Source: Selaginella moellendorffii
Taxonomy: Eukaryota > Plantae > Lycopodiophyta
Direction: 5' to 3'
DNA length: 64,000 nucleotides
NCBI RefSeq assembly: GCF_000143415.4
Contig: NW_003314288.1
Coordinates: 534,939-598,938, forward strand
Made by a program: the position numbers and the translations under genes. Position 1 is the stretch's first letter. Each line of letters begins with the position of its first letter. Of the stretch, positions 8,552 through 58,106 are shown in pieces. The notes beneath the pieces are model-generated. The model did not search any database. It was not told where the DNA came from and saw nothing but the letters and a program-made list of their open reading frames with translations.

Positions 8552-8713
8552 TGAAGCGCATGTGATCATAGGATGAGATTTGGATATACTGTCACCGTAG
8601 ATCCTTGGAACATTGGGGGATAAATGGGGATAAAATAGCCACTAAGGGCTCTCTCATAAAGCAATTGCCCTTTTGCCAATTGGTTTAAGGGGAGAGAGAT
8701 AGGGTGTGCTACA
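8552..8713 (+). mobile_element. Solo LTR of the 665-bp TRIM family
   Basis: 162-bp match to LTRs at 32480-32641 and 32983-33144; TG...CA ends; TSD AATAT on both sides. Confidence 0.9.
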
Positions 8714-15404: not shown

Positions 15405-15455
15405 GACACGTGGCATGGACACGTGGTATGTGACACGTGGCATCTATCACGTGGC
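15405..15455 (+). promoter_or_regulatory. Cluster of four G-box/ABRE-like motifs in the family A LTR (also about 22127-22177; partly degenerate at about 33233-33283)
   Basis: GACACGTGGC, GACACGTGGT, GACACGTGGC and TCACGTGGC within 51 bp; function inferred from motif only. Confidence 0.5.
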
Positions 15456-16669: not shown

Positions 16670-17051
16670 NNNNNNNNNNNNNNNNNNNNNNNNNNNNNNN
16701 NNNNNNNNNNNNNNNNNNNNNNNNNNNNNNNNNNNNNNNNNNNNNNNNNNNNNNNNNNNNNNNNNNNNNNNNNNNNNNNNNNNNNNNNNNNNNNNNNNNN
16801 NNNNNNNNNNNNNNNNNNNNNNNNNNNNNNNNNNNNNNNNNNNNNNNNNNNNNNNNNNNNNNNNNNNNNNNNNNNNNNNNNNNNNNNNNNNNNNNNNNNN
16901 NNNNNNNNNNNNNNNNNNNNNNNNNNNNNNNNNNNNNNNNNNNNNNNNNNNNNNNNNNNNNNNNNNNNNNNNNNNNNNNNNNNNNNNNNNNNNNNNNNNN
17001 NNNNNNNNNNNNNNNNNNNNNNNNNNNNNNNNNNNNNNNNNNNNNNNNNNN
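16670..17051. other. Assembly gap (N run)
   Basis: Run of N. Confidence 1.
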
Positions 17052-20000: not shown

Positions 20001-20174
20001 GCCAGTAATGGGCAGACTGGCTTCGGTACTTCGTGTGCATGGTGAAATCTCTAGTCATGGGGTAGCTACTGTTGACTGGTCACATAACCCGCCTCTTTGT
20101 CGATGTTCCTTATTCCGTTGAAAGGGCGTGACCGTGTAAAAAACTCTAACTGCCTGTTTACAGTAGTCTATCTA

Positions 20175-20767
20175 TGTAAGCTCCTGAGTTTGGACTTCCC
20201 GGGAGGTCACCCAGCCCAGTACTATTCAAACCCAAGGACGCTTAACCCCAAATATCCCAAGACCCTTAACCAATTGGAAAAGGGGGTGCACTCTTGTTCA
20301 TGGGCCCTTTCCCTCTATATTTGAACCCCATGGATCGTCTCTCAAGTCGTTCCCTTTGGTTGCTTACAATCCACCACGCTTCCCTGCAAGTTCACGCCCT
20401 CGTGAACGGAAGCTGAGAGCTGCAGCTCTCCCGAGAGCCCCGCTCTCTTGACACCCTACCCCTCGGGTCGAGCCCAGTGGGAACAAACTGGACCAGCTAG
20501 ATGTCAATCAACATGTGGTGTGATCCCCTTAGCCAACCAACAGAGTCGGACCTGAGACCCCTCTGATACCAAATGTAAGCTCCTGAGTTTGGACTTCCCG
20601 GGAGATCACCCAGCCCAGTACTATTCAAACCCAAGGACGCTTAACCCCAAATATCCCAAGACCCTTAACCAATTGGAAAAGGGGGTGCACTCTTGTTCAT
20701 GGGCCCTTTCCCTCTATATTTGAACCCCATGGATCGTCTCTCAAGTCGTTCCCTTTGGTTGCTTACA
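20175..20767 (-). mobile_element. Cassandra TRIM, young copy nested in the family A 3' internal region
   Basis: 194-bp LTRs 20175-20368 and 20574-20767 (one mismatch seen); minus-strand LTR core GTTAAGCGTCCTTGGGTTTGAATAGTACTGGGCTGGGTGACCTCCCGGGAAGTCC matches the 5S A-box/IE/C-box; PBS(Met); TSD ATCTA; empty site in the paralog at about 24240-24255. Confidence 0.95.
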
Positions 20768-22848
20768 ATCTAAACCTTACCGACGGGTTTGGTTTCTTTG
20801 CTCAGGAGGGTTGGGGCCTCTGGCTTCTCTCTCTATGTCCCTGCGGGCAGGGCATATCACACTTTTGTAAGCTGGGTGACTCCCAGAGCAGCAGGGGTGG
20901 CTGACTCCGTTGGTCATTTCCTTGTCGGCGACAGCCGGAAGGTGTCTGAGCTGGTAGCGCATCCGCGTTAGACAAAGAGGTTTCCCCCTAACTCATTTAA
21001 GTTGGTGCATTTCTCACATAGTGTGAGTACCGTGAACTTTTTATGGAGTTGTTTCCTTGGCGGTATTCTAGACTGGAGTATGCATCGACGAGGACGTCGA
21101 TTTTCCCAAGGGGGGGAGAGTGTCGTGAATGTGACTTCAGGTATCGAAAGTTACCTGTCAGCCAGTCCTTACGGACACTCTTACCTTACTGCCACGACGG
21201 CAGGAGGTCGGTATTGCTGGACCCGTTATTAGTCTCCGCCTAAGCTAGTTGAGAAACTGGTCCTCGCGTGTGCACTTGACCAGATGGGCATAAGGACGGA
21301 ATTCCTAAGTGCTATTAGTCAAGCATACTTGACCTGGTTAGAGAAACTCATTCGTTGACTTGCACTTGCTAGTGTTGGGAACCCCCGCGGTATTGAGCTT
21401 GGTCCCTCAACATCGCTAGATGATAGCTTACCGTGTCTGCCAAACACCCTCGCTATCATGCCCTTTGTGTTAGTCTCAATTCGTCCTAGATGCTATTTAT
21501 GGAAAGTGTCCAGATTTGCTCATTTGGCATATCTACGGAATGTAGAGATCGTCCTGAACACAATGGTGTTCGTCCCGTGTCCAAATTCGCAATCTAAGGA
21601 CATTCCATATTGGAATTTCGAGCTTGTCCCAGAGACTAACTCCTGATACTAAGGGAGGCTTGGGGTGAAAGCCCAAAGCGTGTGTTCCTCAAGGGGGGGG
21701 GGGGTTATGGGGGGTTCGAAATGTATAGTAGGGATAGTGGGTAGGTCGGGCATGGCCGACCAACCTGAGGCATAGTCTAGCTCCCGCTTGCGTGCCTGTC
21801 CTTGTTCTGCGTCCGGCTTGGGTCTAAGCCCAAGTTCCATTCCATGCTAGCTGGTGGAGTACCCATATCCTCACGTTAGGCCACCGGTATGCTGAAATAG
21901 CGCCAGACCCCGTTTGGCTCCGTTTTGCATGCTGGTCCTAGCATTGGGATGCTGGTTGCTCCAGGACTGTTCCAAGTCACTCCGGGCCCCTGTCCCTTCG
22001 CTCCTTGGGCTATATGCTCGGGAGTTGCTCCGTGGTCCGGTTCCATCACTCCTTGGCATCACGTTTGGGAGTTTGGCACTGTTCCTTCGTTCAGTGGCCC
22101 AAGGCCCTGAACCTCGGGTTCCTATGGACACGTGGCATGGACACGTGGTATGTGACACGTGGCATCTGTCACGTGGCACAAAGAGGGTTTAGGTTCCGCT
22201 TCGTGGTGTTATCCTATGGTAAATCACCATAGGATAAAGGGTCAAAACCACGTGCGCTACATTTGGTATCAGAGGATGAGTCTCAGCGAGTACTATTCAA
22301 TGAGATTGGGCAACTAGTCTTGTTGCATACGCAGAGATGAAAACGATGATCCGAGTGGGTACACGTTTTGGTGCAAAGACTTTGCAATCATTCCTTGGGT
22401 ATGGATTTGGTTACCTTCTTGTACCTTATGATGTGAGCTTGCGCTTGGGCTCATAGGATGGTTTGGAGATGTTCTGTTTGCACGAGTTTGAGCTTGGGCT
22501 CGTGAATGAGGCGCATTAGCAACTTGAGGTTACACTTTGAGTTGGCAGGATTAATGTTAGCCTATCGGTGGTTCTGTGAGTTGTTCCTTATACCATGGGT
22601 GAAAAGCAAACCTCCCTGGGTTTGCTGTGAGTGGCAAACCACGTGCGCTACAATGGCCATGGTAAGTTTTTCTTTCCTCAAAACATATGGTTTCCATTAT
22701 TATAAAAAATATACATTTGTATTTTAGTATTGCTTGGCATGAGACTATATGATAGTGTAATGTATTTAAGAGAGTCATCCCATACTTGTGTATAGGGATG
22801 AGAGCGCATGCCTAGAAATCTCAAAACAAAAGAACAAAGATTTACAAG

Positions 22849-25025: not shown

Positions 25026-26038
25026 AGCTTGACAAACTCGAAAATGTCTTCCTAATTCAAAATCCAAAATGGCTATCACCACTAATCATTGTCCCCAAGA
25101 AGAAAAACAAGCTTAGGATTTGTGTCAACTATAAAAAGCTCAACGATACAACTCAAAAAGACTCCTTTTCAATTCCATTCTTTGATAAAATTCTTGATGC
25201 AATTGTAGGATATGAAATGTACTCCTTTCTCAATGGCTTCAATAGACACTATCAAGTACACATTGCATCTGAAGATCAACACAAGATAGCTTTCATCAAT
25301 CCATAGGGAGCATATGCCTACCTTCGCATGCCTTTCAGTCTCTCCAATGCACCATTCATGTTTCAATAGATCATCACTAACACTTTTTGAGACTACCTCA
25401 CCGAATTTATACGAGTATTTATGGATGACTTTAGTGTCTTCAGCAACAAAGAAGATCATCTCCAATGCTTAGAAAAATTCTTCATCAAATGCCATGAACA
25501 CAATATCACATTGAACCCTAACAAGTACATTTTCTTCGTCAAATCAGGAATTCTACTTGGACATGTAGTTTCCAAAGAACGAATCCTCATTAACAAGGAC
25601 ACAATCACCAATATACAACATCCATTTGACATTTCAAGCCTTCAATCACTCCTCAGTAAGATGGGATACCATTGAAGATTCATCAAAGACTACACTAAGA
25701 TTGCAAAACCCATCACCGAACTCCTCAAGAAGAATCAAGCTTACAAACACCTTCATCAACCTCAAGAATTCCCTCACCCAAGCTCCAATACTTGTTCAAC
25801 CAAACTGGAACAAAGACTTCAACATTCAAGTCGACACCTCCAACTACACACTCAGAGTGATCCTTTTGCACCAACAAGAAGATCATAAAGACTGACCAAT
25901 CTACTATGCAAGTTGAAGACTCAACTCAGTCGAAATGAACTACACTATAATTGAAAAAGAAGCTCTAGCAATGATCTACGCACTCCAGAAGTTTTGACAC
26001 TACCTACTCAGTAACTTCTTTCACATTCTCAACAAAAC
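25024..26038 (+). pseudogene. Family C Ty3 pol fragment (RT-RNaseH), left part
   Basis: WLSPLIIVPKKKNKLRICVNY and MDDFSVFS; continues at 39054 after the B composite; paralog at 50440-52830 (minus). Confidence 0.85.
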
Positions 26039-29000
26039 TGTCGCGAATGTGACTTCGGGTATCGAAAGATACTTGTCGACCAGTCCTTACGGACACTCTT
26101 TCCTTACTGCCATGACGGCAGGAGGTCGGTACTGCTGGTTCCCATCATTGGCCCCTCTTGTCCAAGTGTTAGTAAACTGGGCTTAGCATCTGTACTTAGC
26201 CAGATGGACATAAGGTAGGAACTCTTATGTGTTTTTAGTTGAGCATTCTCGGCCTGGCTTTTAGTTCTCTTTTGCTCTGTCTTGCACTGGCTTGGCAAGA
26301 ACCCTCGCGTATTGAGACTAGTCCCTTAATATCGCTGGATGATAGCTTACCGTGTTTGCCAAACACCCTCGCTATCACACCCTTTGTATTAGTCTCATTT
26401 CAGTCCCAAATGCTATTTATGGAAAGTGTCTAGATTCGCTCATTTGGCATATCTACGGAATGTTGAGGTCGGCCTGAACACAATGGTGTTCGTCCTGTGT
26501 CCAAATTCGCAATCTAAGGCCATTCCATATTTAGTAAGTTTTGAGCTTGTCCCAGAGACTAACTCCTGGTACTAAGGGTGGCTTGGGGTGAAAGCCCAAA
26601 GCATGTGTCCCTCAAGGGGGGGGGGGCTGTGGGGGGTTCCAAATGTATAGTAGGGATAGTGGTTGGAATGCATGTCCGACCACCTGAGACATTAGTTTGG
26701 CTCCCGCTGGGCTGTGTCGCTCCTTGTTCTGCGTCCGGCTTGGGTCTAAGCCCAAGCTCCACGCTGCTCTAGTCGGTGGAGTACCCTCCTCCTCGTGTTA
26801 GGCCACCGGTATGCCAAAATTGTGCCAGACTCCGTCTGACACCATTTTGTGTGCAGGTGCTGGATACAGGGAGCTGGTGCTCATGGGATTGTACTGGACC
26901 CTCGTTTCGTAGCGCAACGGGCTTGGAGTTCGGCTCCAAATTCAGGTGCGCTACATTTGGTATCAGAGAACTTGTCTCAGCGATTCCTATCCAACTTTTG
27001 TCGGATTTTCTGACTCAAGTTGCATACGCAGAGACTTTTCTAGTAGATCCGAAGCGACCTGTGTAGGATTTGTTGGATAGCACCATTCGGTAAGAACGTT
27101 ATATGCATGTTCAGTTACTGATGGAGGCATGCATGCAGCTAGCAGAATGGTGAAGAGGAACCATGTTGATGACGCTGAAACCTCTAGACGGGCGAATCGA
27201 GAGGAGGAAACTCCGGCTAGAGATGCTTCGGAAGGGGCTGAGGCCGAGTCAGAAGAGGATGAGCCAAATGCTGCAGCACTGCAGCGCACGGCTCATGAAG
27301 TCGAGATCGAGAATTTGCGAAAAGAGATTCGCAAATTGAAGAAGGAGAACAAGAAGATGAAGAAAGGAGCTGAGGCACCTAAACCAGCCAAGCCTAAGCA
27401 ACTGGACTCCTCCTCTAGTTCTGAGGACGATGAAGTTCTGCAGCCGCCCCCGGTTGCACGAGTTTCAAAGTTCAAGCCTCCAAAGCCACCCAACTTCAGA
27501 GGCATGCAGGACTATCAAGTTTTGGAAGACTGGGTCTACGATATGGAAAACTATTTCATAGCAGCAGACGTAGATGATCGTACGAAAGTTGCGTGCGCGC
27601 AATCCTTTCTCACCGATCATGCCAAAACTTGGTGGTGCCAGGTGTGTGCTGAAAAAGGGCAGACTAGAAGTTGGACCAAGATGCGGTCTCGTATCCGTAA
27701 GGAATACTTGCCGGATGATCTTGGTCTGAGACTTCGCGCAGAGCTGCGGCGGTTAAAGCAGCGAGGGGACCTTATGCATTACATTAATGCGTTTGCTCAG
27801 AAGCGCATTATGATTGCAAATATGAGTGACGAAGATGCTCGGAGTTATTTCTTGGAGGGTTTAAGTTCACTTTCTCGTAATGAGATCTTGAAGTTTAAGC
27901 CGAAGACATACCTGGAGTGTAAGGAGGCAGCGCAGCAAGTTGCCTTTAGTCACTCGCTCATGGAACAATATCAGCAACCTTATGCTGGTAACTCGGATAA
28001 GAATAGGAATTCTGGGAATAAGCAAGGTGATCGGAAACAAAAGGTGGAAAGTAGGTACCGCCCTGGGGGCTCACAAGCTACGGTGAATAAAGGTGGTGGT
28101 GGTTGGAGACCACCAACAGCTTCTTCTGGTCCTAGGCCCTCTGTTCCTCCTCCTGGTGGGTACAAGCAGCAGCAACCTGCAAAACCTGCTCCTAGCGGAA
28201 CGGGTAGTGTGGGTCATTGCTTCCATTGTGGAGAGTCGGGACATAGGTCCTCGGAATGTCCCAACAAGCATAAGACAAGGTCTTGGGTTAATGTCATGAG
28301 GGAAGACGGTGGTGGTGAAGCTGAAGGGGTTGACGAGTTGGTCAATGCAGACTATGAGGAAGAAGAGGTGAGTAACTTTCGTTGCTTTCCTCAAGCTTTT
28401 CTTGCAGTCAATGCAAACACTGATCCGTTGATGTATCTGGTAGGCTTTGTCCGTGGACACCGAATCCGAGTGATGATTGACACGGGAGCTACGCACAGTG
28501 TGATATCCGAAGACTTAGTTAAGTTGTTAGGATTGAATGCTGAGCAAATGTCGCCTATGCACTTCCGGTTTCCGGAAGGTGGGCAAGTAGCCAGAAAGTT
28601 TGTGAGTGATGTTCCAATAAAGATATCCAAGTGGAAAGAAAGAGTGGACTTGGTAGTGTTGAAGATACCAGATTTTCAAATGGTGTTTGGTATGGATTTC
28701 TTCAACAAGTATATCAAAGGGATTTATGGTGCTGGACAAAGTCGTATCACGTTGAAGTCAGAAGGACGTCCTGATGTATCCTTTCAGTTGCAAAAGCGTT
28801 CCTCAAAGGATTGGGATGCAAAGTTCCTGACTGTGAGGGCCGCTCAAAAAGCAGCTAAAAGGGGATGTCAAACCTTTTGGGTTCAAGTGATGGAAGCTGA
28901 GAGTGTGGGTGACTCGGTTCGAATCGGTGACGGGGTTGATCTTGTACCACAGAAGATATTGGAGTTGTTGGCATGGAATCAGGATATCTTTCCAAAGGAT

Positions 29001-29520
29001 TTGCCGCCAGGGCTACCCCCTAGCCGTGAGGTTGATCATCGGATTGAGGTTATTCCGGGTTCTAAACCACCTACAAAGGCTCCGTATCGTCTGAACATCA
29101 AGGAGATGGCTGAACTCAAGAAGCAACTCACAGAGCTTCTTGACAAAGGTCATATCCGACCAAGTAAATCCCCTTATGGAGCGCCGGTCCTTTTTGTTAT
29201 GAAAAAGGATGGAACCATGAGGATGTGTATTGACTATCGGGCACTTAACAAGATCACGGTTAAAAACAGTTATCCTTTGCCTCGCATTGATGACTTGTTT
29301 GACCAACTCTTAAAGGCTAAGTATTTTACGCAACTTGATTTGCGGTCCGGGTATCATCAGATATGGGTGGTAGATCAGGATGTGGAGAACACAGCCTTTA
29401 AGACTCGGTACGGATCTTATGAGTTCCTTGTCATGCCGTTCGGGTTATGCAATGCTCCGGCAACGTTCAGCACTATGATGAATAGAATATTTGGAGATTA
29501 TTTGGACGCATTTGTTGTCC
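26039..29520 (+). mobile_element. Family B chromovirus copy B1, truncated within RT
   Basis: 5' LTR 26039-26955 (TG..CA), PBS TGGTATCAGAG, gag-PR-RT; near-identical to B2; stops just before the YIDD motif. Confidence 0.92.
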
Positions 29521-29768
29521 AGCCAAGGGGAACCAGCACCTCCATTTCCGCACTGAATCTACCAATCCTACCAATCCTTCCATTGTGTAGACTAGCTATT
29601 CCATGTGAGGCAACTAGTCATCCACCCGTACCGCAGTCCCACGGTGGATACATTCGTCCGTGGATACTCCACACAAGAGGAAGGACGTACGCATGGATGC
29701 CCAATACGTATGATTTCAATTTTAGGGGTAGGAATATACCTTGCTCAAGGGTATATTATACTTTTTAA
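27129..29768 (+). CDS. Ty3 Gag-PR-partial RT of B1; the C-terminal ~80 aa are read-through into the TRIM fragment
   Basis: [14 protein letters not shown] knuckle, VMIDTGAT protease, [15 protein letters not shown] and [10 protein letters not shown]; diverges from B2 after DAFVV at 29520. Confidence 0.85.
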
Positions 29769-29981
29769 GTAGCCATTAATCAATAGGAATCAAACCCGTG
29801 CCATTTGCTCCGATACCAACTGTAGCGCACCTTATCTCTCTCCCCTTAAGCCAACTAGAAAAGGGGCAATTGCTTGATGAGAGAGCCCTTAGTGGCTATT
29901 TTATCCCCATTTATCCCCCAAGGTTCCAAGGATTCACGGTGACAGTATATCCAAATCTCATCCCATGATCACATGCGCACA
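29521..29981 (-). mobile_element. Partial TRIM (5' LTR 29821-29981, PBS, part of the internal region) joining B1 and B2
   Basis: Reverse complement of about 32480-32922 with small indels. Confidence 0.9.
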
Positions 29982-31410
29982 GAATGATCACACAAAATGG
30001 TGTCAGACGGAGTCTGGCACAATTTTGGCATACCGGTGGCCTAACACAAGGAGGAGGGTACTCCATCGACTAAAGCAACGTGGAGCTTGGGCTTAGACCC
30101 AAGCCGGACGCAGAACAAGGAGCGACACAGCCCAGCGGGAGCCAAACTAATGTCTCAGGTGGTCGGACATGCATTCCAACCACTATCCCTACTATACATT
30201 TGGAACCCCCCACAGCCCCCCCCTTGAGGGACACACGCTTTGGGCTTTCACCCCAAGCCACCCTTAGTACCAGGAGTTAGTCTCTGGGACAAGCTCGAAA
30301 CTTACTAAATATGGAATGGCCTTAGATTGCGAATTTGGACACGGGACGAACACCATTGTGTTCAGGCCGACCTCAACATTCCGTAGATATGCCAAATGAG
30401 CGAATCTAGACACTTTCCATAAATAGCATTTGGGACCGAAATGAGACTAATACAAAGGGTGTGATAGCGAGGGTGTTTGGCAGACACGGTAAGCTATCAT
30501 CCAGCGATATTGAGGGACTAGTCTCAATACGCGAGGGTTCTTACCAAGCCAGTGCAAGACAGAGCCAAAGAAAACTAAAAGCTAGGCCGAGAATGCTCAG
30601 CTAAAAACACATAGGAGTTCCTACCTTATGTCCATCTGGCTAAGTACAGATGCTAAGCCCAGTTTACTAACACTTGGACAAGAGGGGCCAATGATGGGAA
30701 CCAGCAGTACCGACCTCCTGCCGTCATGGCAGTAAGGAAAGAGTGTCCGTAAGGACTGGTCGACAAGTATCTTTCGATACCCGAAGTCACATTTGCGACA
30801 CTCTCCCCCCCTTGGGGAAGATCGACATCCTCGTCGATGCATACCCGAGTCTAGCAAACCGTCAAGGAAACAACTCCGAAAGTTAACGGAAAGCACACTA
30901 TGTGGGAAACACACCGACTTAAATGAGTTATGGAACGACCTCTCCTCTACGTCCAAAGACGTTAAAACTCAGACACCCTCCAGCCGTCGCTGACAAGGAA
31001 ATGACCAACAGAGTTAACCACCCTTGCTGCTCCGAGTACCACCCAGCTTACAAAGGAATGATACATCCCTGCCCGCAGGGATATAGGGAGAAGGCCAGAG
31101 ACCCAACTGCCCCTGAGCAAGAAATCAACCCCGTCGGGAAGATTTAGACAACTATTATAAACTTGCAGATTAAGTTGTTTACACGACCACGCCCCATTTC
31201 GAAAATGAGTCATCGAGAGAGAGGCGGGGACTTGTGATCAGTCTATAATAGTTATCCCCATGGTTATGGATTGGACACATGCACCGAAGTGCCGAAGTTA
31301 GCCTGCCAAAACTGACCCAAGTACTAACGAACGAGAGAAATGACACTTTGATTTATAGAAATATATTACTTTATTGATTTGCAAGATTTATTACAAGATT
31401 TTTATAAAAG

Positions 31411-32479
31411 CTAGTCTTTATTACTATTCTCATACTCCGTGACAAGCTCACGAGCATGGGTAAGATTACAAAGAGGCTCCCAAGTTGATTCACAAGTAGG
31501 GTAACCTTTCCATTTAACTAGATACTCCCGACATTTGGCATGTTTAAGCCAGCGTGAATCCAAAATAGCTTCAGCCTCATACTCAGGTTCACCGTCAATG
31601 ATCGTAGGTGGAGGACGATCCTCAGCAGCATGATATGGTGCCAGTAAACTGACATGAAACACATCATGTACATGAGAGAATTCATCTGGAAGATCCAACT
31701 TATAGGATACATCACCAACTCGTCTCAACACCCTATAGGGTCCAACATATCTCGGCAATAATTTCCGAGATAAACATCCCTTAATGTTCAAGTTCCGGGA
31801 AGATAGCCACACTTGATCTCCCACTTGATAGGATACATCCCGACGATGCTGATCCTTATCATGTCGATACCTATCCTGAGCTTTGCCCATCGCCTCAGTA
31901 GCTCTAGACCAACCTTGGCGTAGCTGCTCCGCATAAGTCTCAACAGCCGGGACCAACATTTCGGACATAGGTTTCGGTACAACAATCTGTTGAGGAACCC
32001 CACGAGCATTCCCTTGCAATATCTCCCATGGAGAACAGCCTATAGCGCTATGAAATGTGTTGTTATAACAGATTTCTGCTGTGTCTAAATGCTCAACCCA
32101 GTCGCGTTGGTCCGCCGCGACATAGTACCGCAGATAATCCTCAATTTGAGCATTCACGTGTTCGGTCTGCCCATCAGTCTGAGGATGATAAGCCGTACTA
32201 AACTTCAATTTGGTACCGAACAACTGGAATAGGGTCCCCCAAAACTTCCCCGTAAACCTCGAATCTCTATCTGAGATCATTTCTTCAGGAAGACCACGAA
32301 CTCGCACTACTTCATGGAAAAAGAGCTTTGCTGCTTGTTTCGCATTTACTGTTCCCACAGTTGGAATGAAGTGTGCAATCTTTGACAACCAATCCACAAC
32401 CACCATCAAAGTATCATAACCCTTAGACTTCGGCAAGCAAGTGACGAAATCAAGTGTCACACTTTGAAATGGCCATGCC
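31411..32479 (-). CDS. B2 integrase core, GPY/F motif and chromodomain (split from the upstream polyprotein by an insertion)
   Basis: TLDFV, ISDRDSRFTG, STAYHPQTDGQTE, PRYVGPY, YEAEAILD..EYLVKWKGYP..ESTWEP. Confidence 0.92.
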
Positions 32480-33144
32480 TGTAGCGCATGTGATCATGGG
32501 ATGAGATTTGGATATACTGTCACCGTGGATCCTTGGAACCTTGGGAGATAAATGGGGATAAAATAGCCACTAAGGGCTCTCTCATCAAGCAATTGCCCCT
32601 TTTCCAGTTGGCTTAAGGGGAGAGAGATAAGGTGTGTTACAGTTGGTATCGGAGCAAATGGCACGGGTTCGATTCCCATTGATTAGTGGCTACTTAAAAG
32701 TATAATATACCCTTGAGCAAGGTATATTCCTACCCCTAAATTTGAAATCGTACGTATTGGGCATCCATGCATACGTCCTTCCTTTTGTGTGGAGTATCCA
32801 CGGACGAAGGTATCCACCGTGGGACTGCGATACGGGTGGATGACTAGTTGCCTCACATGGAATAGCTGGTCTACACAATGGAAGGATTGGTAGATTGAGT
32901 GCGGAAATGGTTCCCCTTGGCTCAGTAGGGGTTGTTAGTCAATAGTCAATGAGGACATTGACATCTCTGAAGGGGGGGTGAGTGTAGCGCATGTGATCAT
33001 GGGATGAGATTTGGATATACTGTCACCGTGGATCCTTGGAACCTTGGGAGATAAATGGGGATAAAATAGCCACTAAGGGCTCTCTCATCAAGCAATTGCC
33101 CCTTTTCCAGTTGGCTTAAGGGGAGAGAGATAAGGTGCGTTACA
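32480..33144 (+). mobile_element. Complete 665-bp TRIM
   Basis: 162-bp LTRs 32480-32641 and 32983-33144; GT spacer then PBS TGGTATCGGAGC; PPT GAAGGGGGGGTGAG; no coding capacity. Confidence 0.93.
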
Positions 33145-33148
33145 GTAA

Positions 33149-34294
33149 TGTAGCGCACGTGGTTTTGACCCTTTATCCTATGGTGATTTACCATAGGATA
33201 ACACCACAAAGCGAAACCTAAACCCTCTTTGTGCCACGTGACAGATGCCATGTGTCACATGCCACGTGTCCATGCCACGTGTCCATAGGAACCCAAGGTT
33301 CAGGGCCTTGGGCCACTGAACAAACGAACGGTGCCAAACTCCCAAGCATGGAGCCAAGGAGTGATGGAACCAAACCACGGAGCAACTCCCGAGCATACAG
33401 CCCAAGGAGCGAAGGGACAGGGGCCCGGAGCGACTTGGAACAATCCTGAAGCAACCAGCATCCCAATGCCAGGACTAGCACGCAAAACGGAGCCAAACGG
33501 AGTTTGGCGCTATTTCGGCATACCGGTGGCCTAACGTGAGGATATGGGTACTCCACCAGCTAGCATGGAATGGAACTTGGGCTTAGACCCAAGCCGGACG
33601 CAGAACAAGGACAGGCACGCAAGCGGGAGCTAGACTATGCCTCAGGTTGGTCGGCCATGCCCGACCTACCCACTATCCCTACTATACATTTGGAACCCCC
33701 CATAGCCCCCCCCCCCTTGAGGAACACACGCTTTGGGCTTTCACCCCAAGCTTCCCTTAGTATCAGGAGTTAGTCTCTGGGACAAGCTCGAAACTTACTA
33801 AATATGGAATGTCCCTAGATTGTGAATTTGGACACGGGACGAACACCATTGTGTTCAGGCCGATCTCTACATTCCGTAGATATGCCAAATGAGCAAATCT
33901 AGACACTTTCCATAAATAGTATTTGGGACAAATTGAGACTAACATAGAGGGCATGATAGCGAGGGTGTTTGGCAGACACGGTAAGCTATCATGTAGCGAT
34001 ATTGAGGGACCAATCTCAATACGCGAGGGTTCTTGTCAAGCTAGTGCAAGACAGAGCAAAAGAGAACTAACAAGCCGGGCCGAGTATGCTCAGCTAAATA
34101 GACACTTAGGAATTCCTTCCTTATGCTCATCCGGCCAAGTACAGATGCAAAGTCCAGTTTACTAACACTTGAACAAGAGGGGCTAATAAAGGGTCCAGCA
34201 ATACCTACCTTCTGCCATCGTGGCAGTAAGGTAAGAGTGTCCGTAAGGACTGGCCGACAGGTAACTTTCGATACCTGAAGTCACATTCGCGACA
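33149..34294 (-). mobile_element. Family A solo LTR, joined tail-to-tail to the TRIM
   Basis: Reverse complement of 14393-15539; shares the outer TSD ATGCC with the TRIM. Confidence 0.92.
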
Positions 34295-34328
34295 ATGCCG
34301 GTGCTGGAATGCACTGCAACTTTCCAGC

Positions 34329-37300
34329 CTACTTCTCAGTTCTAAGCTTACATTGCTGGCATATAGGGCAGGAACGGACATAATCCGCTACATCACCTTC
34401 CATACCAGACCAGAAAAATCCCTTTTTCAATGAAGCCAGAGTCTTTCGCTGTCCACCATGTCCCGCTGCTAGAACATCATGATGTTCCCGCAGAAATAAC
34501 TGCTGAAGATCCTTAGAGGGAAGATACAATCTTTCTTGCTTATAGAATATAAGCCCATCCCGAACTGAGAAGTGAAACTTCGCATTAGTGCGACTAGCAA
34601 CTTTTGCTGCTTTGCTACCAAGGCTCTGCTTCAAAAACCCCGCACGGCATAAGATTGCCTTCGCCAATGGATCACTTCCATACGAAGCCCGAACATCCTT
34701 CAACCAGTCCGAACTGATTGCCGATAATGCCCGGAACTGAGCTTGATGACTCAACGCGTCCGGAACAATATTGTCCTTACCAGGTTTATATATGATTTCA
34801 ATATCATATCTAGCAAGCTTCTCTTGCCAACGAGCCTGCTTTGGCGTAAGCTTAGGCTGCGTAGCAAAGTAGCTCAGTGTGTTACTATCTGTATAAACCT
34901 TGGTATGTCCACCCAAGTAGTGTCTCCAGTGTTCCAGGGCCGACACTATAGCAAACATCTCTTTCTCATGCGTTGGCCATCTTTGTTGGGTCTCATCCAA
35001 TTTCTTGGAATAGAACGCAACGGGACAACCATGTCGCCTTAGCATAACACCAACTGCTTTGTCACAATCTTGCTGCAACACGGCACCGATAGCATAACCA
35101 GATGCATCACAATGCACTTCGAAAGGTTTATCAAGATCTGGGATCCTGAGAACAGGAACCGTAGTCAAGATCTCCTTCAACCGTGCAAAAGCACGCTGGC
35201 AAGCTGGTGTCCAATGAAACGGAATACTACTCTTTGTCAACTCAGTCAACGGAAGAGCAATCCTTGCAAAATTGCAGACAAACTTGCGATAGTATCCCGC
35301 CAAACCGAGAAAGGATCGAACATCTGTTACAGTGGTTGGAACTTCCCAGGACTTCACTGCTTCCACCTTCTTTGGATCGACCTCAATCACACCACCACCA
35401 ACTATATGTCCGAGAAAGTTTACGCGCAATTGTCCAAAAGCGCATTTACTTTCCTTAGCATACAGTTTGTGTTCACGCAACTTCTGAAACACCAGCTCCA
35501 AGTGTTTCAAATGATCCTCCAACGTCTCACTAAAGACAAGAACATCGTCGATGTATAGGACAACAAATGCGTCCAAATAATCTCCAAATATTCTATTCAT
35601 CATAGTGCTGAACGTTGCCGGAGCATTGCATAACCCGAACGGCATGACAAGGAACTCATAAGATCCGTACCGAGTCTTAAAGGCTGTCTTCTCCACATCC
35701 TGATCTGCCACTCGTATCTGATGATACCCGGACCGCAAATCAAGTCGCGTAAAATACTTAGCCTTTAAGAGTTGGTCAAACAAGTCATCAATGCGAGGCA
35801 AAGGATAACTGTTTTTAACCGTGATCTTGTTAAGTGCCCGATAGTCAATACACATCCTCATGGTTCCATCCTTTTTCATAACAAAAAGGACCAGCGCTCC
35901 ATAAGGGGATTTACTTGGTTGGATATGACCTTTGTCAAGAAGCTCTGTGAGTTGCTTCTTGAGTTCAGCCATCTCCTTGATGTTCAGACGATACGGAGCC
36001 TTTGTAGGTGGTTTAGAACCCGGAATAACCTCAATCCGATGATCAACCTCACGGCTAGGGGGTAGCCCTGGCGGCAAATCCTTTGGAAAGATATCCTGAT
36101 TCCATGCCAACAACTCCAATATCTTCTGTGGTACAGGATCAACCCCGTCACCGATTCGAACCGAGTCACCCACACTCTCAGCTTCCATCACTTGAACCCA
36201 AAAGGTTTGACATCCCCTTTTAGCTGCTTTTTGAGCGGCCCTCACAGTCAGGAACTTTGCATCCCAATCCTTTGAGGAACGCTTTTGCAACTGAAAGGAT
36301 ACATTAGGACGTCCTTCTGACTTCAACGTGATACGACTTTGTCCAGCACCATAAATCCCTTTGATATACTTGTTGAAGAAATCCATACCAAACACCATCT
36401 GAAAATCTGGTATCTTCAACACTACCAAGTCCACTCTTTCTTTCCACTTGGATATCTTTATTGGAACATCACTCACAAACTTTCTGGCTACTTGCCCACC
36501 TTCCGCAAACCGGAAGTGCATAGGCGACATTTGCTCAGCATTCAATCCTAACAACTTAACTAAGTCTTCGGATATCACACTGTGCGTAGCTCCCGTGTCA
36601 ATCATCACTCGGATTCGGTGTCCACGGACAAAGCCTACCAGATACATCAACGGATCAGTGTTTGCATTGACTGCAAGAAAAGCTTGAGGAAAGCAACGAA
36701 AGTTACTCACCTCTTCTTCCTCATAGTCTGCATTGACCAACTCGTCAACCCCTTCAGCTTCACCACCACCGTCTTCCCTCATGACATTAACCCGAGACCT
36801 TGTCTTATGCTTGTTGGGACATTCCGAGGACCTATGTCCCGACTCTCCACAATGGAAGCAATGACCCACACTACCCGTTCCGCTAGGAGCAGGTTTTGCA
36901 GGTTGCTGCTGCTTGTACCCACCAGGAGGAGGAACAGAGGGCCTAGGACCAGAAGAAGCTGTTGGTGGTCTCCAACCACCACCACCTTTATTCACCGTAG
37001 CTTGTGAGCCCCTAGGGCGGTACCTACTTTCTACCCTTTGTTTCCGATCACCTTGCTTATTCCCAGAATTCCTATTCTTATCCGAGTTACCAGCATAAGG
37101 TTGCTGATATTGTTCCATGAGCGAGTGACTAAAGGCAACTTGCTGCGCTGCCTCCTTACACTCCAGGTATGTCTTCGGCTTAAACTTCAAGATCTCATTA
37201 CGAGAAAGTGAACTTAAACCCTCCAAGAAATAACTCCGAGCATCTTCGTCACTCATATTTGCAATCATAATGCGCTTCTGAGCAAACGCATTAACGTAAT

Positions 37301-37949
37301 GCATAAGGTCCCCTCGCTGCTTTAACCGCCGCAGCTCTGCGCGAAGTCTCAGACCAAGATCATCCGGCAAGTATTCCTTACGGATATGAGACCGCATCTT
37401 GGTCCAACTTCTAGTCTGCCCTTTTTCAGCACACACCTGGCGCCACCAAGTTTTGGCATGATCGGTGAGAAAGGATTGCGCGCACGCAACTTTCGTACGA
37501 TCATCTACGTCTGCTGCTATGAAATAGTTTTCCATATCGTAGACCCAGTCTTCCAAAACTTGATAGTCCCGCATGCCTCTGAAGTTGGGTGGCTTTGGAG
37601 GCTTGAACTTTGAAACTCGTGCAACCGGGGGCGGCTGCAAAACTTCATCATCCTCAGAACTAGAGGAGGAGTTTGGTTGCTTAGGCTTGGCTGGTTTAGC
37701 TGCCTCAGCTTCTTTCTTCCTCTTCTTGTTCTCCTTCTTCAATTTGCGAATCTCTTTTCGCAAATTCTCGATCTCGACTTCATGAGCCGTGCGCTGCAGT
37801 GCTGCAGCATTTGGCTCATCCTCTTCTGACTCGGCCTCAGCCCCTTCCGCAGCATCTCTAGCAGGAGTTTCCTCCTCTCGATTCGCCCGTCTAGAGGTTT
37901 CAGCGTCATCAACACAGTTCCTCTTCACCATCCTGCTAGCTGCATGCAT
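34329..37949 (-). CDS. B2 Gag-PR-RT-RNaseH-integrase N-terminal polyprotein
   Basis: Long open frame with zinc knuckle, [33 protein letters not shown] and HHCC (H..H..CPICQQC); ends at a TAG that is probably a mutated CAG. Confidence 0.95.
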
Positions 37950-39053
37950 GCCTCCATCAGTAACTGAACATGCATACAACATTCTTACCGAATGGTGCTA
38001 TCCAACTAATCCTACACAGGTCGCTTCGGATCTACTAGAAAAGTCTCTACGTATGCAACTTGAGTCAGAAAATCCGACAAAAGTTGGATAGGAATCGCTG
38101 AGACAAGTCCTCTGATACCAAATGTAGCGCACCTGAATTTGGAGCCGAACTCCAAGCCCGTTGCGCTACAAAACGAGGGTCCGGAACAATCCCATGAGCA
38201 CCAGCTCCCCGTATCCAACACCTGCACACAAAATGGTGTCAGACGAAGTCTGGCACAATTTTGGCATACCGGTGGCCTAACACGAGAAGGAGGGTACTCC
38301 ACCGACTAGAGCAGCGTGGAGCTTGGGCTTAGACCCAAGCCGGACGCAGAACAAGGAGCGACACAGCCCAGCGGGAGCCAAACTAATGTCTCAGGTGGTC
38401 GGACATGCATTCCAACCACTATCCCTACTATACATTTGGAACCCCCCACAACCCCCCCCCCCCCCCCCCCCCCCTTGAGGGACACATGCTTTGGGCTTTC
38501 ACCCCAAGCCACCCTTAGTACCAGGAGTTAGTCTCTGGGACAAGCTCGAAACTTACTAAATATGGAATGGCCTTAGATTGCGAATTTGGACACGGGACGA
38601 ACACCATTGTGTTCAGGCCGACCTCAACATTCCGTAGATATGCCAAATGAGCGAATCTAGACACTTTCCATAAATAGCATTTGAGACCGAAATGAGACTA
38701 ATACAAAGGGTGTGATAGCGAGGGTGTTTGGCAGACACGGTAAGCTATCATCCAGCGATATTGAGGGACTAGTCTCAATACGCGAGGGTTCTTGCCAAGC
38801 CAGTGCAAGACAGAGCAAAAGAGAACTAAAAGCCAGGCCGAGAATGCTCAGCTAAAAACACATAGGAGTTCCTACCTTATGTCCATCTGGCTAAGTACAG
38901 ATGCTAAGCCCAGTTTACTAACACTTGGACAAGAGGGGCCAATGATGGGAACCAGCAGTACCGACCTCCTGCCGTCATGGCAGTAAGGAAAGAGTGTCCG
39001 TAAGGACTGGTTGACAAGTATCTTTCGATACCCGAAGTCACATTCGCGACACT

Positions 39054-39490
39054 AAACGATCCTCACCGGTAGAATTGCACAATGGTTCTTACTACTTCAA
39101 GAATACAACTTCAAGATCATCTACAAGCTTGGAAGAGAACATGAACAAGTCAACCACTTAAGCCGCATTACAACCGTTGAACCGAAACACAATATGGATG
39201 AATTTCTTGACTCCAATATCCTTCGAATCCACACATCACCAACCTAGATGGACAACATCTACTACTATCTCACAACAGCAACAATACCAAGTCGATATTC
39301 AACCTCCGACAAGCGCAAATAATTTGTCTTGAGGACAAAACCATATTCATTCGTGGGAAGAAGACTGTACAAACAAAAGACAACATTTTATGAAGATGTG
39401 CAAACCCAGAAGAAACACAAGATCTACTTGAAAAAGCCTAATGTGGACAAGTAGGAGGACATTTTGCTGAAGAAATCACAGCTCGAAAAA
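39054..39490 (+). pseudogene. Family C Ty3 pol fragment, right part (RNaseH end and integrase N-terminus)
   Basis: Collinear continuation of 25024-26038 according to the uninterrupted paralog at about 51150-51600. Confidence 0.85.
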
Positions 39491-39891
39491 GCTGGACAGA
39501 TGTTAACTCAGGAAAAGTGCATCTTTTTTCTATTGGGGTTAGGAGTCACTCACAAAGTGATGAGATTGCGGTCAAGCTCAAGCAATTGTTGCTGAGAATG
39601 AAAGAGGAGGGGTACGCGAGTGATATGATCAACATTCTAAAAGACATACCCAAGGAAGAGAAAGAGGATCACTTGTGCAGCCACAGTGAGAAGCTTGCGC
39701 TGCGGTGTGCTCTGGTGAACTCTCACCAGAAGGAGACCATCAGAATTGTGAAAAATCTCTGAGTTTGTGACGATTGCCATGCAGCCACTGCTCTCATCTC
39801 TAAGCTGGTAAAAAGGTTAATCATCTGCAAAGATGCCAGTCAGGTTCATGTGTTCCAGGATGGCAGATGTTCCTGTGACAACTAATTTTGA
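39491..39891 (+). pseudogene. Isolated DYW-domain fragment, a third paralog of the PPR-DYW genes
   Basis: WTDVNSGKVHLFSIG..HSEKLA..IVKNL*VCDDCH..; near-identical to 45725-46124 with premature stops; followed by the same downstream block. Confidence 0.9.
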
Positions 39892-41329
39892 AAACATGTC
39901 AGTGCTCTTTCTTGCAGTTATCCCTGGTTTTAAACCCTCCGTGAGTCAAGCAGAAACATGGGCCGCTGAGTGAGCATGCCTCGTCAAAGTACCGCAGTCA
40001 ACCTAAACTTCACAGAGAAAAAATTAACATTTAAAAGTTAAAACTATGCAAAAGGAGGATGACACGTTGTCTTAAATTTAAATTTCTTTTTGGTAGAAGA
40101 ATGGGGGAATGCTGACTAAACCTGCCAACAGGTGCACCCAGATTCAGATAATAAGCCTTAGTATGAAGACTTGCCGGTACCCAAACTCTTTGCTGATAGC
40201 AAGTACCGCCTCATGTTCCGGGAGCAAGGTGATGGCGGCTTGCGGCATGACCAACTTTGGGTTTGTGCTCCTAGAGCACGTTGAAGACGTGTGGAAGCTG
40301 GTGACGATGGCATTTGTTTCTTGCGATGTACTCACCAGTTCCTCGGCAACGTCTTCCTTCCAGATTTTTTGAGCTTGTCGTGAGTGGTGACCTGCTTGCT
40401 CTCTCCTGTGACGACTTCTTCCAGCCTCTGGTGCCCAACCTCAAGGCTCTCTTGTGGATGGAGCTAGCCCTACACAGTGTGTGTGTGTGTCAACCAGCAG
40501 ATGCACAAATCGTTGAGAAGTAGCAACAAGTGTGTATCAGGCTTAGTACGTAGTGTACTAGTGTACATGTACATGTGTTTCAGCTAAATATAATGGGCCA
40601 AATACACCGAAGAAGTGCATATAAGAAGAGTAGAAACAAATTAAAAAATGTAAATTAAGAAGTGCAAAAGAAATGAAAATAAAAATTGTCCATCCTCATC
40701 AGTTTGCTGAAATTAAGTTGGATTCATTTCTTTCAGCTCCAAATATTGTGTGATTGAGTTGTAAGCTAATTAATAGTAGAAAATAAGAAAAAAACAAACA
40801 TTGAAAAAATAGTGTTTGATAATATCTTCTTTGCTTTTAGTTTTTTATTTTCGAAAGAAAATTAGTGGGGGAGTGCTGGTAAAGATATCTTGGCCGTTCA
40901 TTGGTGGTTAATTAAATGAGCATGTTTAGAGCTGTTTATAAGAGTTTAGCTCTGGACCAATTCGAACATGAGTTACCCGAAAATTAAAGTTCAAATTTAC
41001 GTTTTCCCTATTTGCACAATAACTTAAGCTAAAGTAATGTACTTACCCTTATTTTTTATGGGAAAATTATTTCGCACGAAAAGAAGGCGAATTTAGAGAA
41101 TTCTTAAGTAATTTTCAAAAACCCCGACCAAATCTAAAGTGTTGGGAGGGGTCATTTTATTTTAAGGGAAGTTGTTAAAAATTATTCCGGAAATATTCGA
41201 GAAGATTCTTAGGTTAGGGTTTGGCATTCTTCAATTAGGTTTTGTTGCTTTCATGCACATTGCGGATGACAAGAGCCCCAGTCTCCAAGTGCTGCCTGAG
41301 GAAGAAGACTGTGAACTTGAGGTATGTCG

Positions 41330-41560
41330 GGCTGTGATTGGGAGGAGGTTTTGCATCGGCCTGTGGTGGGTGAAGCCTCGAAATGTCACCACCTAGGTGG
41401 AAGAGGAAACTTCAGATGGAGAAGAGGACCTTCTTCACCATTTGTGGCATGCTGGAGAGTGAGATCCAGAAGCAAGGTTGGAGGAGTGCGGTGCCGGTGG
41501 ATGTTCGACTGGGGGTGACTTTGTACAAGCTTTTCAAGAACACAGATTACCTGGATCTGG
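41330..41560 (+). mobile_element. PIF/Harbinger-type transposase fragment
   Basis: WKRKLQMEKRTFFTICGML..AVPVDVRLGVTLYKL resembles the FRMxxxxF..L and AIPVxxRxAxxL..L N-terminal motifs of Harbinger/HARBI1 nucleases. Confidence 0.6.
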
Positions 41561-43367
41561 CACCAAGCCCCAAACCACCCAGCAGTCTTGGCGCACAGGG
41601 ATGACATCAGCCCTAACCTCTTGCTCCACTGAGCTGCTAGCAGCTTCTCCCCTCCTTAAAAAAAAAGGTCTGTTGTTCTCTTGGAGTTCAAGAGGCATCT
41701 TCTTCACCGTCTCCTCTGTTTTTGCTAGCTAGTTAGCTCTTACAAGAAGGAGCACAAGCCAAGTTCAGCTTCATGCTCAGCTCTATCATCTCCTCTTTAA
41801 GACACCTCACCTCTTTGAACATTCAGGAGAGCTAGCACGCTTCACGTCTAGACGTCCCCCCCCCCCCTTTTTTTTTCACAATTGTCTCTTCAAACTCATC
41901 ATACTTATTTAACTCACCAAACCTTACCAAGCCGAGTGCAGGTTTTGAAACCCCATGAGTCACCTTGGCTTCCAGTTGAGCTCTCCAACAATCTTGACGT
42001 GCGGATGCGTGCAAACTGCTCCTTGAGCCAGGACCATTTCTCCAGGAGATAACTTATGCTACAACACTCTCCGCTCGACGATCTCAATGTGGAAAGATCC
42101 ACAAAGCTGTCCCACTCATCATAGTTGTAGAAGAAATCATCCTCATACTGCATCTGCAACCTTGCTCGAGCCCAAGCCTCCGCCATCACAAGCTTCTCCC
42201 TCATCTTGATCAGCTCACACTTGAGGCGGCAAAACAAGTCCAGGTCCTGAGGAACAACAATGGAATACACCTTTCCCGGGTACCTGTCTCGAAACCTGTG
42301 AAAGTACAGTGGACGATGTGGTGTTTCAGATCACAGCGGAATGATAACTTGATGAAAGCAACAAAACCATCGAGCTCGCTCTTTGGGGATCAATTATCAT
42401 CTCCTCCTTTGAAGCAATGAGCAGCAGGCCTTGATCGCATCCAGAAGTACTAGAGATAGTCTGCAAAAGCAAGTTTGACACCAGTTATTTTGGCAACACA
42501 GAAGAAAAAGAAGAAAATTTATAGAGATCCATACAATCCAAATCAAGATCAATCCTCCACGAATTTAATGCCGCTTTCAGCACCTCCAAGCTCTTCCGAA
42601 AAACGTAGCCACGGTATGCCACAATCGTTCACTTGAAAATCTGAAGATGTCAATCGAAGCATGCAAGCAAAAACATGAAGTAAAGAAGCGCAGGTGGACA
42701 ACAAAGGAGATGAACTGAGCAAGGCCAAGAACACATATAAGGACTGACTGTAAGCACTTGAGGCCTCGCGCAGTTTTTTCCTCCGTGCGTGGCTTCATAT
42801 GCAAAAGAGTTTGGTGTGGTAAGGTATGTTGCAGAGCAGCCAGAAGCCCAGGGTGAATATAAGTACGTGAGGCCTTGTGAGGTTTTACCACTGCCCGAGG
42901 ACTCCTGTGCATGGACCCCGGGCGAGACTCATTTGCGAAAGTGTTCTGCATAAAACTGGTGCCCTGAGGCTTTTGGCCGTGTCGCCCCATGAAGAGCATT
43001 TTTTATTTAATTTGTGTAGAGTGTGGTTTATTTTTGCATATTGAGTGTATCGATATCTTTTAGTTAGCAGATTATATTGAAGAACTGAAGACTACCTACA
43101 GTTAAGTGCATGCAGCAACAGATCATATAAAAAATGAATGCAGAGAATAACAAATCGGGATTTCTAGGAAGTTCGTGCGTGTTGTTAGCATGTACTGATT
43201 CTTTAGCTCTTGAGCAACTGATTGCTGCTGGCTCACATTCTATATATATCAAAGAGATTTTTTTTAAACAATAAACATCTAAGCTGCTGCAGTTAAGCTG
43301 TGACATTGTAAAGTTTAAAAAGGAAAAGAAGAAAAAACAGAAAACACGAAATCGGGATTTCTAGGGT

Positions 43368-46124: not shown

Positions 46125-46849
46125 AAACATGTCAGTGCTCTTTCTTGCAGTTATCCCTGGTTTTAAACCCTCTGTGAGTCAAGCAGAAACATGGGCCGCT
46201 GAGTGAGCATGCCTCGTCAAAGTACCGCCGTCAACTTGAACTTCACGGAGAAAAAATTAACATTTAAAAGTTAAAACTATGCAAAAGGAGGATGACACGT
46301 TGTCTTAAATTTAAATTTCTTTTTGGTAGCAGAATCGGGGAATGCTGACTAAACCTGCCAACAGGTGCGCCCAGATTCAGATAATAAGCCTTAGTATGAA
46401 GACTTGCCGGTACCAAACTCTTTGCTGATAGCAAGTACCGCCTCATGTTCCGGGAGCAAGGAGATGGCAGCTTGTGGCATGACTAACTTTGGGTTTGTGC
46501 TCCTAGAGCACGTTGAAGACGTGTGGAAGCTGGTGATGACAGCATTTGTTTCTTGCGACGTCACCAGTTCCTCAGCGATGTCTTCCTTCCAGATTTTTTG
46601 AGCTTGTCGTGAGTGGTGACCTGCTTGCTCTCTCATGTGACGACTTCTTCCAGCCTCTGGTGCCCAACCTCAGGACTCTCTTGTGGATGGAGCTAGCCCT
46701 ACACAGTGTCTGTGTGTGTGTTTATCAACCAGCAGATGCACAAATCGTTGAGAATCATAGGCTTAGTATGTAATGTACTAGTGTACATGTACATGTGTTT
46801 CACAGCAGTGGACAAGCTATGATACAATGAAAAAGGTAAAGTCAGGTAT

Positions 46850-58081: not shown

Positions 58082-58106
58082 CACACACACACACACACAC
58101 ACACAC
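58082..58106 (+). repeat. (CA)n microsatellite, length-variable among the three paralogous blocks
   Basis: CACACA run; shorter (GT)n runs at about 40477 and 46710. Confidence 0.9.

Follow-up and report, generated by a model that had tools for sequence, protein, structure and literature searches.

A TRIM and a family-A LTR joined tail-to-tail under one target-site duplication: a probable two-cDNA integration in Selaginella moellendorffii

A 64,000-nt stretch of the Selaginella moellendorffii genome (contig NW_003314288.1, positions 534,939 to 598,938 of the forward strand), which is referred to here as the window and in whose own numbering all positions are given, contains two different long terminal repeat (LTR) retrotransposon sequences that appear to have entered the chromosome together. 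They form a 1,815-bp insert, defined by sequence reading, in which a complete terminal-repeat retrotransposon in miniature (TRIM) and a solo LTR of a second family, which we call A, lie tail-to-tail with GTAA alone between them, under a single target-site duplication (TSD). We consider it probable that this composite is the product of one concerted integrase event, which used the U3 ends of two cDNA molecules whose unprocessed U5 ends were joined blunt to each other.

The TRIM (32480-33144, plus strand) is 665 bp long. Its 5' LTR (162 bp, 32480-32641) starts with the U3 terminus TGTAGCGCATGTG, which lacks the AG of the polypurine tract (PPT) side and abuts the left copy of the TSD, ATGCC (32475-32479), and it is followed by a GT spacer (32642-32643) and, from 32644, by a primer-binding site (PBS) of the initiator-Met tRNA type, TGGTATCGGAGC (spacer and PBS together, 32642-32655). 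At the other end, a PPT (GAAGGGGGGGTGAG, 32969-32982, ending ...GGTGAG and including the AG before the 3' LTR) precedes a 3' LTR of 162 bp (32983-33144) with the end ...GCGTTACA, which differs from the 5' LTR only by a C/T at a CpG (161/162 identical). The next two nucleotides, GT (33145-33146), equal the spacer between LTR and PBS of the TRIM, the BLAST homology of the TRIM LTRs running 2 nt past the LTR. The two after that, AA on the plus strand and TT on the minus strand (33147-33148), match on comparison the spacer of family A and of a related autonomous family, B. Directly after GTAA, TGTAGCGCACGTGG... is the U5 end (33149) of a full-length, minus-strand family-A LTR (1146 bp, 33149-34294), whose U3 terminus, TGTCGCGAATGTG at 34294, abuts the right copy of ATGCC (34295-34299, placed by sequence reading). 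This LTR can be aligned from one terminus to the other with two further A LTRs (14393-15539 and 21121-22261), with ~92.7% identity over ungapped sites (~91% by BLAST, with gaps counted). The outer termini of the composite are TGTAG... and ...GCGACA, and the 5-bp duplication around the pair is perfect, but neither part has a TSD of its own since the TRIM is flanked by ATGCC and GTAAT, and the A LTR by AGTAA and ATGCC.

The target is the integrase gene of B2, a minus-strand copy of family B (29989-39051), which is a Ty3/gypsy chromovirus encoding, according to Pfam, gag, protease, reverse transcriptase, RNase H, integrase and chromodomain (5' LTR at 38123-39051; 3' LTR at 29989-30800, truncated on its U5 side). 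To check the empty site, the flanking sequence was read and compared with a collinear homologue, and the left TSD copy was placed by the same two means. The flanks form one continuous B2 frame, in which ...LQCIPAPA is followed by WPFQSVTLDF... across the insertion point. In an unrelated chromovirus protein, residues 328-942 align at 36125-34347 and residues 958-1222 at 32478-31684, the gap in the alignment being just the residues that are encoded between 34346 and the insertion point. Because the homologue is collinear and the frame continuous, no target sequence has been lost beyond the 5-bp duplication. A separate in-frame stop in B2 (34329-34331) is unrelated to the insert. Homologue searches found only distant relatives of the B2 pol (best 38% identity) and integrase-chromodomain (best 49%) products, and exact-protein look-ups of seven open reading frames (ORFs) of the window (B2 pol, integrase-chromodomain, junction-spanning, TRIM, A-LTR and both PPR) returned none on record. 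LTR divergence is K=0.006 for the TRIM versus K=0.019 for its host B2, a timing that is coherent with a later insertion of the TRIM into an older B copy.

These results settle the descriptive part of a sequence-only reading of the window that preceded this analysis. It had described the TRIM and the inverted A LTR with GTAA between them, the single ATGCC duplication around the pair and a B2 integrase frame that is restored when the insert and one ATGCC are removed, and every coordinate and both claims about the target are borne out by the flanks, the single frame and the collinear homologue. The spacers it had assigned, GT to the TRIM and TT to A, prove constant among the copies in the window (see below), and the odds of about 1 in 256 that it gave for a chance match of the four central nucleotides are close to our own figure.

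Related repeats are densely nested in this region, and a mis-join or a chimeric read might be suspected of having introduced the TRIM or the A LTR. Nothing is shared at the GT/AA joint, however, that could have led an assembler to collapse it, and a perfect TSD in an intact target is not something that a mis-join would produce. As for the inverted pair formed by B2 and another B copy, B1 (see below), a fold-back read is contradicted by arms that differ by ~1.9%. An assembly artefact is therefore, in our view, very improbable.

Linear cDNA of LTR retrotransposons is blunt and has two extra base pairs at each end, which are removed by integrase, and this holds for Ty3 too. GT is the spacer in both TRIM copies that could be compared, the one in the composite and a second copy (29819-29820, minus strand), and TT is found in four of four A and B copies (A at 15540-15541 and 22262-22263; B at 26956-26957 and 38121-38122). 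The end of an ordinary TRIM insertion looks different: in a solo LTR at 8552-8713, the TSD, AATAT, comes immediately after ACA. We read GT and AA at the centre of the composite as the unprocessed U5-end dinucleotides of a TRIM cDNA and an A cDNA, respectively. The probability of GTAA is ~1/208 by window composition (~1/208 to 1/256 as the range for a chance match), and that of a matching 5-mer TSD ~1/1000. The bare motif TACA-N4-TGTA is common enough (0.88 expected per window); the significance of the joint rests on its context. A metagenome-wide scan for the palindromic GTGYGYTACA-N4-TGTARCRCAC gave 12 matches, about the number expected by chance, all of them unrelated hairpins.

The outer ends of the composite tell the opposite story to its inner ends. 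In these families, AG precedes the U3 of 3' LTRs (...GGGGGGG(A/T)GAG). Both outer ends lack this PPT-side AG and abut the 5-bp TSD, from which it follows that they were processed and joined by integrase, while the inner ends retain their dinucleotides and so were never processed by it. Every hallmark of integrase-mediated integration is thus present on the outside (TG...CA ends that have lost their terminal dinucleotides, and a 5-bp TSD in a target that is otherwise complete), and on the inside there is a joint of unprocessed ends like that of 2-LTR circles, both LTR termini being complete and each having its own extra dinucleotide. This pattern bears on a capture without integrase, in which two free cDNAs would have been end-joined into a chromosomal double-strand break in B2, as happens when cDNA is captured at breaks in yeast. 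The inner joint is indeed blunt and of the end-joining type, and elsewhere in the window, in the inner region between B1, a second TRIM copy and B2, there are signs of error-prone end joining, with a filler (ATCATTC) that is probably templated. Capture does not, however, leave the target intact but for a canonical 5-bp duplication, and captured ends would be expected to retain the AG that both outer ends lack, which makes this explanation barely credible.

In the explanation that we favour, the composite would be the fossil of one aberrant integration with two separate reverse-transcribed DNA molecules, (i) a complete TRIM cDNA and (ii) a family-A cDNA, either full length or LTR only. Integrase, synapsing the two molecules in trans, would have trimmed both U3 ends and inserted them 5 bp apart in the integrase gene of the older B copy, a staggered insertion that would account for the ATGCC duplication. 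The U5 ends, never engaged by integrase, would have kept the GT (TRIM) and the TT (A) next to the PBS position. These blunt ends would then have been joined, most simply by host non-homologous end joining and just before or just after strand transfer, into the product ...ACA-GT/AA-TGT.... Ligation before integration, repair of a chromosome break after integration and an end-to-end jump of reverse transcriptase all give the same sequence, and a full A element later reduced by LTR-LTR recombination fits the solo LTR equally well as a dead-end cDNA consisting of an LTR only. The mechanism put forward by the sequence-only reading, that is, ligation of two U5 ends followed by integration of the dimer via its U3 ends, is hence upheld in part: the exact U5-U5 joint, the kept spacers, the outward U3 ends and the single TSD all agree with it, but the order of ligation and integration does not follow from them. 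Its later reduction of A to a solo LTR likewise agrees with the only form of A that is present, but so does an LTR-only dead-end cDNA. Finally, of the shared particle or integration complex that it offered as alternatives, the single TSD implies the complex, since it places the TRIM and A in one intasome, but not that they shared one particle.

The end-to-end jump deserves a closer look, because it would replace two molecules by a single chimeric cDNA made in one particle. Having extended the TRIM plus strand as far as the 5' end of its minus-strand template (...ACAGT), reverse transcriptase would have jumped, without homology, to the 3' end of an A plus strand ending ...CATT; the acceptor could be plus-strand strong-stop DNA after early tRNA removal, which would then have been copied to the U3 start. 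Such a molecule predicts exactly the observed order, TRIM-GT/AA-(A LTR inverted), and the observed outer ends, with integrase then using two U3 ends, and it would explain the solo LTR from the outset, without later recombination. Template switching has already been invoked for three-LTR complexes under a single TSD (PMC1950507), of which there is a family-A example in the window, and the junctions of composite elements of yeast Ty1 lie at dead-end replication intermediates (PMC2939329). What speaks against a chimeric cDNA is that its acceptor must end exactly at the spacer without a copy of the PBS, which is not a normal strong-stop product, and that there is no microhomology at GT/AA to guide the jump. 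Sequence alone cannot separate it from ligation. We regard it as unlikely.

Most of the simpler histories founder on the flanks. Sequential insertion is excluded by them, and so is ordinary nesting of one element in the other, in which the inner one would have its own TSD. In a double insertion at one site, the middle would be ATGCC and not the 4-nt GTAA, and insertion of the TRIM into the left TSD copy would also put ATGCC mid-insert. Had A been inserted into a tandem TRIM after its GT, its two flanks should be alike, but they are AGTAA and ATGCC. We also rejected an integrase attack of one cDNA on the other, after which GT would be gone, and a PBS-PBS hairpin deletion, which requires an implausible precursor.

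The strongest conventional rival is a stepwise one, starting from a full minus-strand A with the TSD ATGCC and the TRIM inside it and ending, after two deletions, with the present structure. The first deletion is credible. The TRIM U3 start is identical over 9 nt, TGTAGCGCA, to the reverse complement of the A U5 end, and in such a precursor these would be direct repeats at the left terminus of A and at the start of the TRIM, between which the left part of A could have been removed; AA would then simply be A's own spacer. Deletions of a microhomology or illegitimate type did occur nearby (22638/22639, 29520/29521 and the truncated B2 3' LTR). The second deletion, which would have to clear everything from the TRIM to the A 5' LTR, is not credible, as it must end exactly 2 nt past the TRIM and 2 nt short of the A LTR without microhomology. 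In addition, the GT beside the TRIM would be there by chance (1/16); if GTAAT were instead the TRIM's own target copy of native A (CAAAT in A copies), two substitutions in the first two PBS bases would be needed. TRIM LTRs that are 99.4% identical also leave little time for stepwise events. We therefore find this history improbable.

Several points nonetheless weigh against a concerted two-cDNA integration and should be kept in mind. Owing to the 9-nt identity, the left boundary alone is non-diagnostic, since a microhomology deletion could mimic it, and the illegitimate deletions just mentioned (e.g. at 22638/22639 and 29520/29521) show that deletion-based rearrangement has been active in the window. 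Only a solo A LTR is present, for which an extra event or an unusual LTR-only cDNA must be assumed. The whole case comes from one locus in one assembly, a search of the 64-kb window for such junctions gave no second example, and the literature searched contained no direct experimental support for trans-synapsis of two U3 ends in vivo.

The three families involved have similar ends. The TRIM of the composite is typical of its class in size (665 bp, against an upper limit of ~1.5 kb, with LTRs of 162 bp in a usual range of ~100-250 bp) and in structure, with a PBS by the 5' LTR, a PPT by the 3' LTR and no coding capacity (longest ORF 62 aa). It departs from the class in having no TSD of its own, but the family makes a 5-bp TSD elsewhere, as in the solo LTR at 8552-8713 (AATAT). 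Scans against Rfam and for tRNAs gave no Rfam match and no tRNA in the composite. Shortly after the PBS of this TRIM (32656-32700), GGGTTCGATTCCC resembles a tRNA T-arm or box B, and this stretch, in which ARAGORN and Rfam found no tRNA, has CGATTCC(C/T)AT in common with the leader of B.

Family A was characterised on a reference copy, a plus-strand, three-LTR tandem under the single TSD ATGGC (14393-22652), which defines the ends of the A LTR, the TT spacer, the PBS and the PPT. This copy, and not the solo LTR of the composite, is what identifies A as a large retrotransposon derivative (LARD): it has 1.15-kb LTRs, TT followed by TGGTATCAGAG, a PPT and a 5.6-kb internal region, in which there is no ORF longer than 161 aa, no Pfam match and no match to pol by tblastn. 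On these sequence features, A is a LARD-type non-autonomous element, which would need a helper because it has neither pol homology nor a long ORF. The LTRs of A and B are ~82-87% identical over most of their length, and the two families also agree in their U5 terminus, in the TT spacer and the PBS, in motifs of the leader that follows the PBS and in the stretch ahead of the PPT. A terminal 13-nt consensus, TGT(A/C)(G/A)C(G/A)(C/A)A(T/C)(G/C)T(G/T), is conserved in an alignment of the six kinds of ends of A, B and the TRIM. The U3 end of the TRIM (TGTAGCGCATGTG) and the reverse complement of the A U5 end (TGTAGCGCACGTG) differ at one position, so that the composite, when read on its minus strand, starts like A and finishes almost like A. 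By virtue of this resemblance to the U5 end of A and B, the TRIM end means that the composite would have offered a B-type integrase a plausible A/B-like pair of ends. More generally, because A and the TRIM have the LTR termini, the kind of PBS and the spacer position of the autonomous B, both presumably depended on a reverse transcriptase and an integrase of the B type. For a packaging of TRIM and A RNA in one virus-like particle, the evidence is indirect and consists of the termini, PBS type and leader motifs held in common with B and of the single TSD.

The composite is not the only complex insertion of this lineage in the window. B2 is itself part of a second inverted pair, which it forms with B1, a partial, plus-strand B copy that faces it (26039-29520, from a 5' LTR at 26039-26955 through reverse transcriptase). 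With their U3 termini outward, the two make up one 13-kb insertion (26039-39051) in the reverse transcriptase/RNase H region of a C-type gypsy element, and the flanks of this insertion (25950-26038 and 39052-39150) are contiguous in an uninterrupted paralogous gypsy copy (51480-51660). The overlap between them, which would be a short target duplication, is either 6 nt long, with CAAAAC on one side and CTAAAC on the other, or 4 nt long (AAAC) and preceded by CT, which is complementary to the AG of the PPT side. Divergence among the three B LTRs is star-like, with 7 (B1), 5 (B2 5' LTR) and 10 (B2 3' LTR) private differences over ~812 nt, which argues that B1 and B2 have the same source and age. 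The inner region of the pair is unclean, consisting of the truncated B2 3' LTR, a 7-nt filler, a TRIM fragment that starts from its exact U3 terminus and B1 truncated in reverse transcriptase. On the minus strand, the junction between the B2 3' LTR and this second TRIM copy (29960-30000, filler at 29982-29988) reads ...TTTTGTGTG-ATCATTC-TGTGCGCATGTGATCATGG; TGTGATCAT recurs 10-20 nt onward in the LTR of the TRIM, a pattern that resembles the templated insertions typical of end joining of the polymerase-theta type. Judging from its layout, the B1/B2 pair looks like a second U3-U3 event, the distal ends of which would have been closed by error-prone end joining or later deleted.

A third case is the family-A reference copy itself (14388-22657 with its TSDs, ATGGC), in which LTRs and internal regions alternate (LTR-internal-LTR-internal...). 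Its first two LTRs are 99.0% identical, and its third unit is deleted between internal nt ~377 and the final 14 nt of its LTR (junction 22638/22639). Multi-unit complexes thus account for three of the four insertions of this lineage in the window in which both ends can be scored; by contrast, ordinary TSDs are found at the Cassandra-type TRIMs and at another gypsy element in the window. The B1/B2 pair and the three-LTR A complex argue that multi-cDNA insertions recur in this lineage. A bolder proposal would be that the integrase of the B/A/TRIM lineage regularly synapses the U3 ends of two cDNAs from the same particle, with inverted dimers as a recurrent by-product. This is possible but doubtful. 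If it were true, the process would have left two fossils in the window, the TRIM-A joint and the B1/B2 pair, and these would directly prove which autonomous family mobilises the TRIM and the LARD.

Comparison with known systems helps to place the composite. The junctions of 2-LTR circles keep the two extra base pairs of each terminus and are attributed to host non-homologous end joining. The TRIM-A joint is like them in being a blunt joint of complete LTR termini that keeps base pairs normally cut by integrase, but unlike them it is U5-U5 rather than U5-U3, links two different elements and lies in linear, chromosomal DNA under a TSD. Plant examples of 2-LTR circle junctions come from extrachromosomal circular DNA (PMC9324142). 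Having more than one element unit per integration under one outer TSD is a property that the composite has in common with tandemly arrayed TRIMs (PMC4717578) and with three-LTR complexes (Sabot and Schulman, 2007; PMC1950507). Those complexes, however, are ascribed to minus-strand template switching and involve one family arranged head-to-tail with a shared middle LTR, features that are found in the family-A complex (14393-22652) but not in the TRIM-A composite, which joins two families in inverted orientation, lacks a common LTR and contains spacer dinucleotides at its joint. Inverted tandems of transposable elements that result from double insertion leave a copy of the target site at the middle junction (McGurk and Barbash, 2018; PMC5932611); the composite is similarly inverted at one locus but has GTAA, not ATGCC, in the middle.

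In vitro, concerted integration by retroviral integrases can use two donors, in which case each intasome takes one end from each of them and inserts the two with the canonical stagger, the donors being short. The composite would differ in being a natural genomic product and in that its distal ends have been re-joined, and the literature searched gave no report of such a product. Two-donor products are not mentioned in the titles and abstracts of papers on concerted integration (e.g. PMC8742673). The closest experimental precedent is composite integration by Ty1 in yeast, where integrase accepts any duplex whose TG...CA ends are suitable and generates a 5-bp TSD (Kiechle et al., 2000, as cited by Friedl et al., 2010; PMC2939329), and where the composites consist of foreign DNA joined to replication intermediates at defined ends. 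These Ty1 composites differ from the TRIM-A composite in being experimental (transformed DNA, ku mutants or integrase overexpression) and in involving plasmid or PCR DNA, with no U5-U5 inverted joint described. No report of a natural, heterologous, integrated U5-U5 dimer was found in the literature, which is a weak negative since most subscription journals were outside the coverage.

The remainder of the window contains further repeats and genes. Two Cassandra-type TRIMs, one on the minus strand (20174-20770, nested in the A internal region) and one on the plus strand (7184-7741), have 5S-rRNA-like LTRs (Rfam 5S_rRNA scores of 34.4 and 31.2 bits, under the gathering score of 38), a TT spacer, the PBS TGGTATCAGA and 5-bp TSDs (TAGAT and AGTAT), and the motif CCCCTTTTCCA(A/G)TTGG(C)TTAAGGG is common to their LTRs and to the TRIM of the composite. 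A gypsy element at 53021-57508 has 188-bp LTRs (TGTGAGG...CTCACA, ~89% identical) and an apparent TSD of 4 bp (GTGC) instead of 5 bp. An inverted segmental duplication (39493-46802 versus 57519-64000, ~90-96% identity) has in each arm one intronless PPR-DYW gene identified by Pfam (43368-46124, plus strand; 58692-62078, minus strand). Both genes contain internal tandem repeats of 333 bp (111 codons) in differing copy numbers (43812-44981 and 59835-61667), and their nearest database relatives are S. moellendorffii proteins with 85-87% identity. The S. moellendorffii scaffolds GL377646.1 and GL377582.1 contain paralogous, not orthologous, loci with 88-96% DNA identity that includes non-coding sequence, and in one of the two there is a related TRIM-like solo LTR.

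If the explanation that we favour is correct, the composite is a natural chromosomal record of an LTR-retrotransposon integrase drawing its two ends from different DNA molecules, which to our knowledge has otherwise been seen only in test-tube assays. It would also provide a physical link, made in a single integration, between a TRIM and a LARD-type element and, via their shared termini, tie both of them to a chromovirus, at a time when the autonomous mobilisers of TRIMs are still largely unverified (PMC4717578). The kept dinucleotides would report the end structure of unintegrated cDNA in elements that have never been studied at the bench. On a more practical note, such events would produce inverted repeats and confusing nests, which annotation pipelines that expect one TSD per element will mis-call. 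Finally, if they are recurrent – as the B1/B2 pair and the three-LTR A complex within 64 kb hint – they would represent a distinct route of genome restructuring in this lycophyte.

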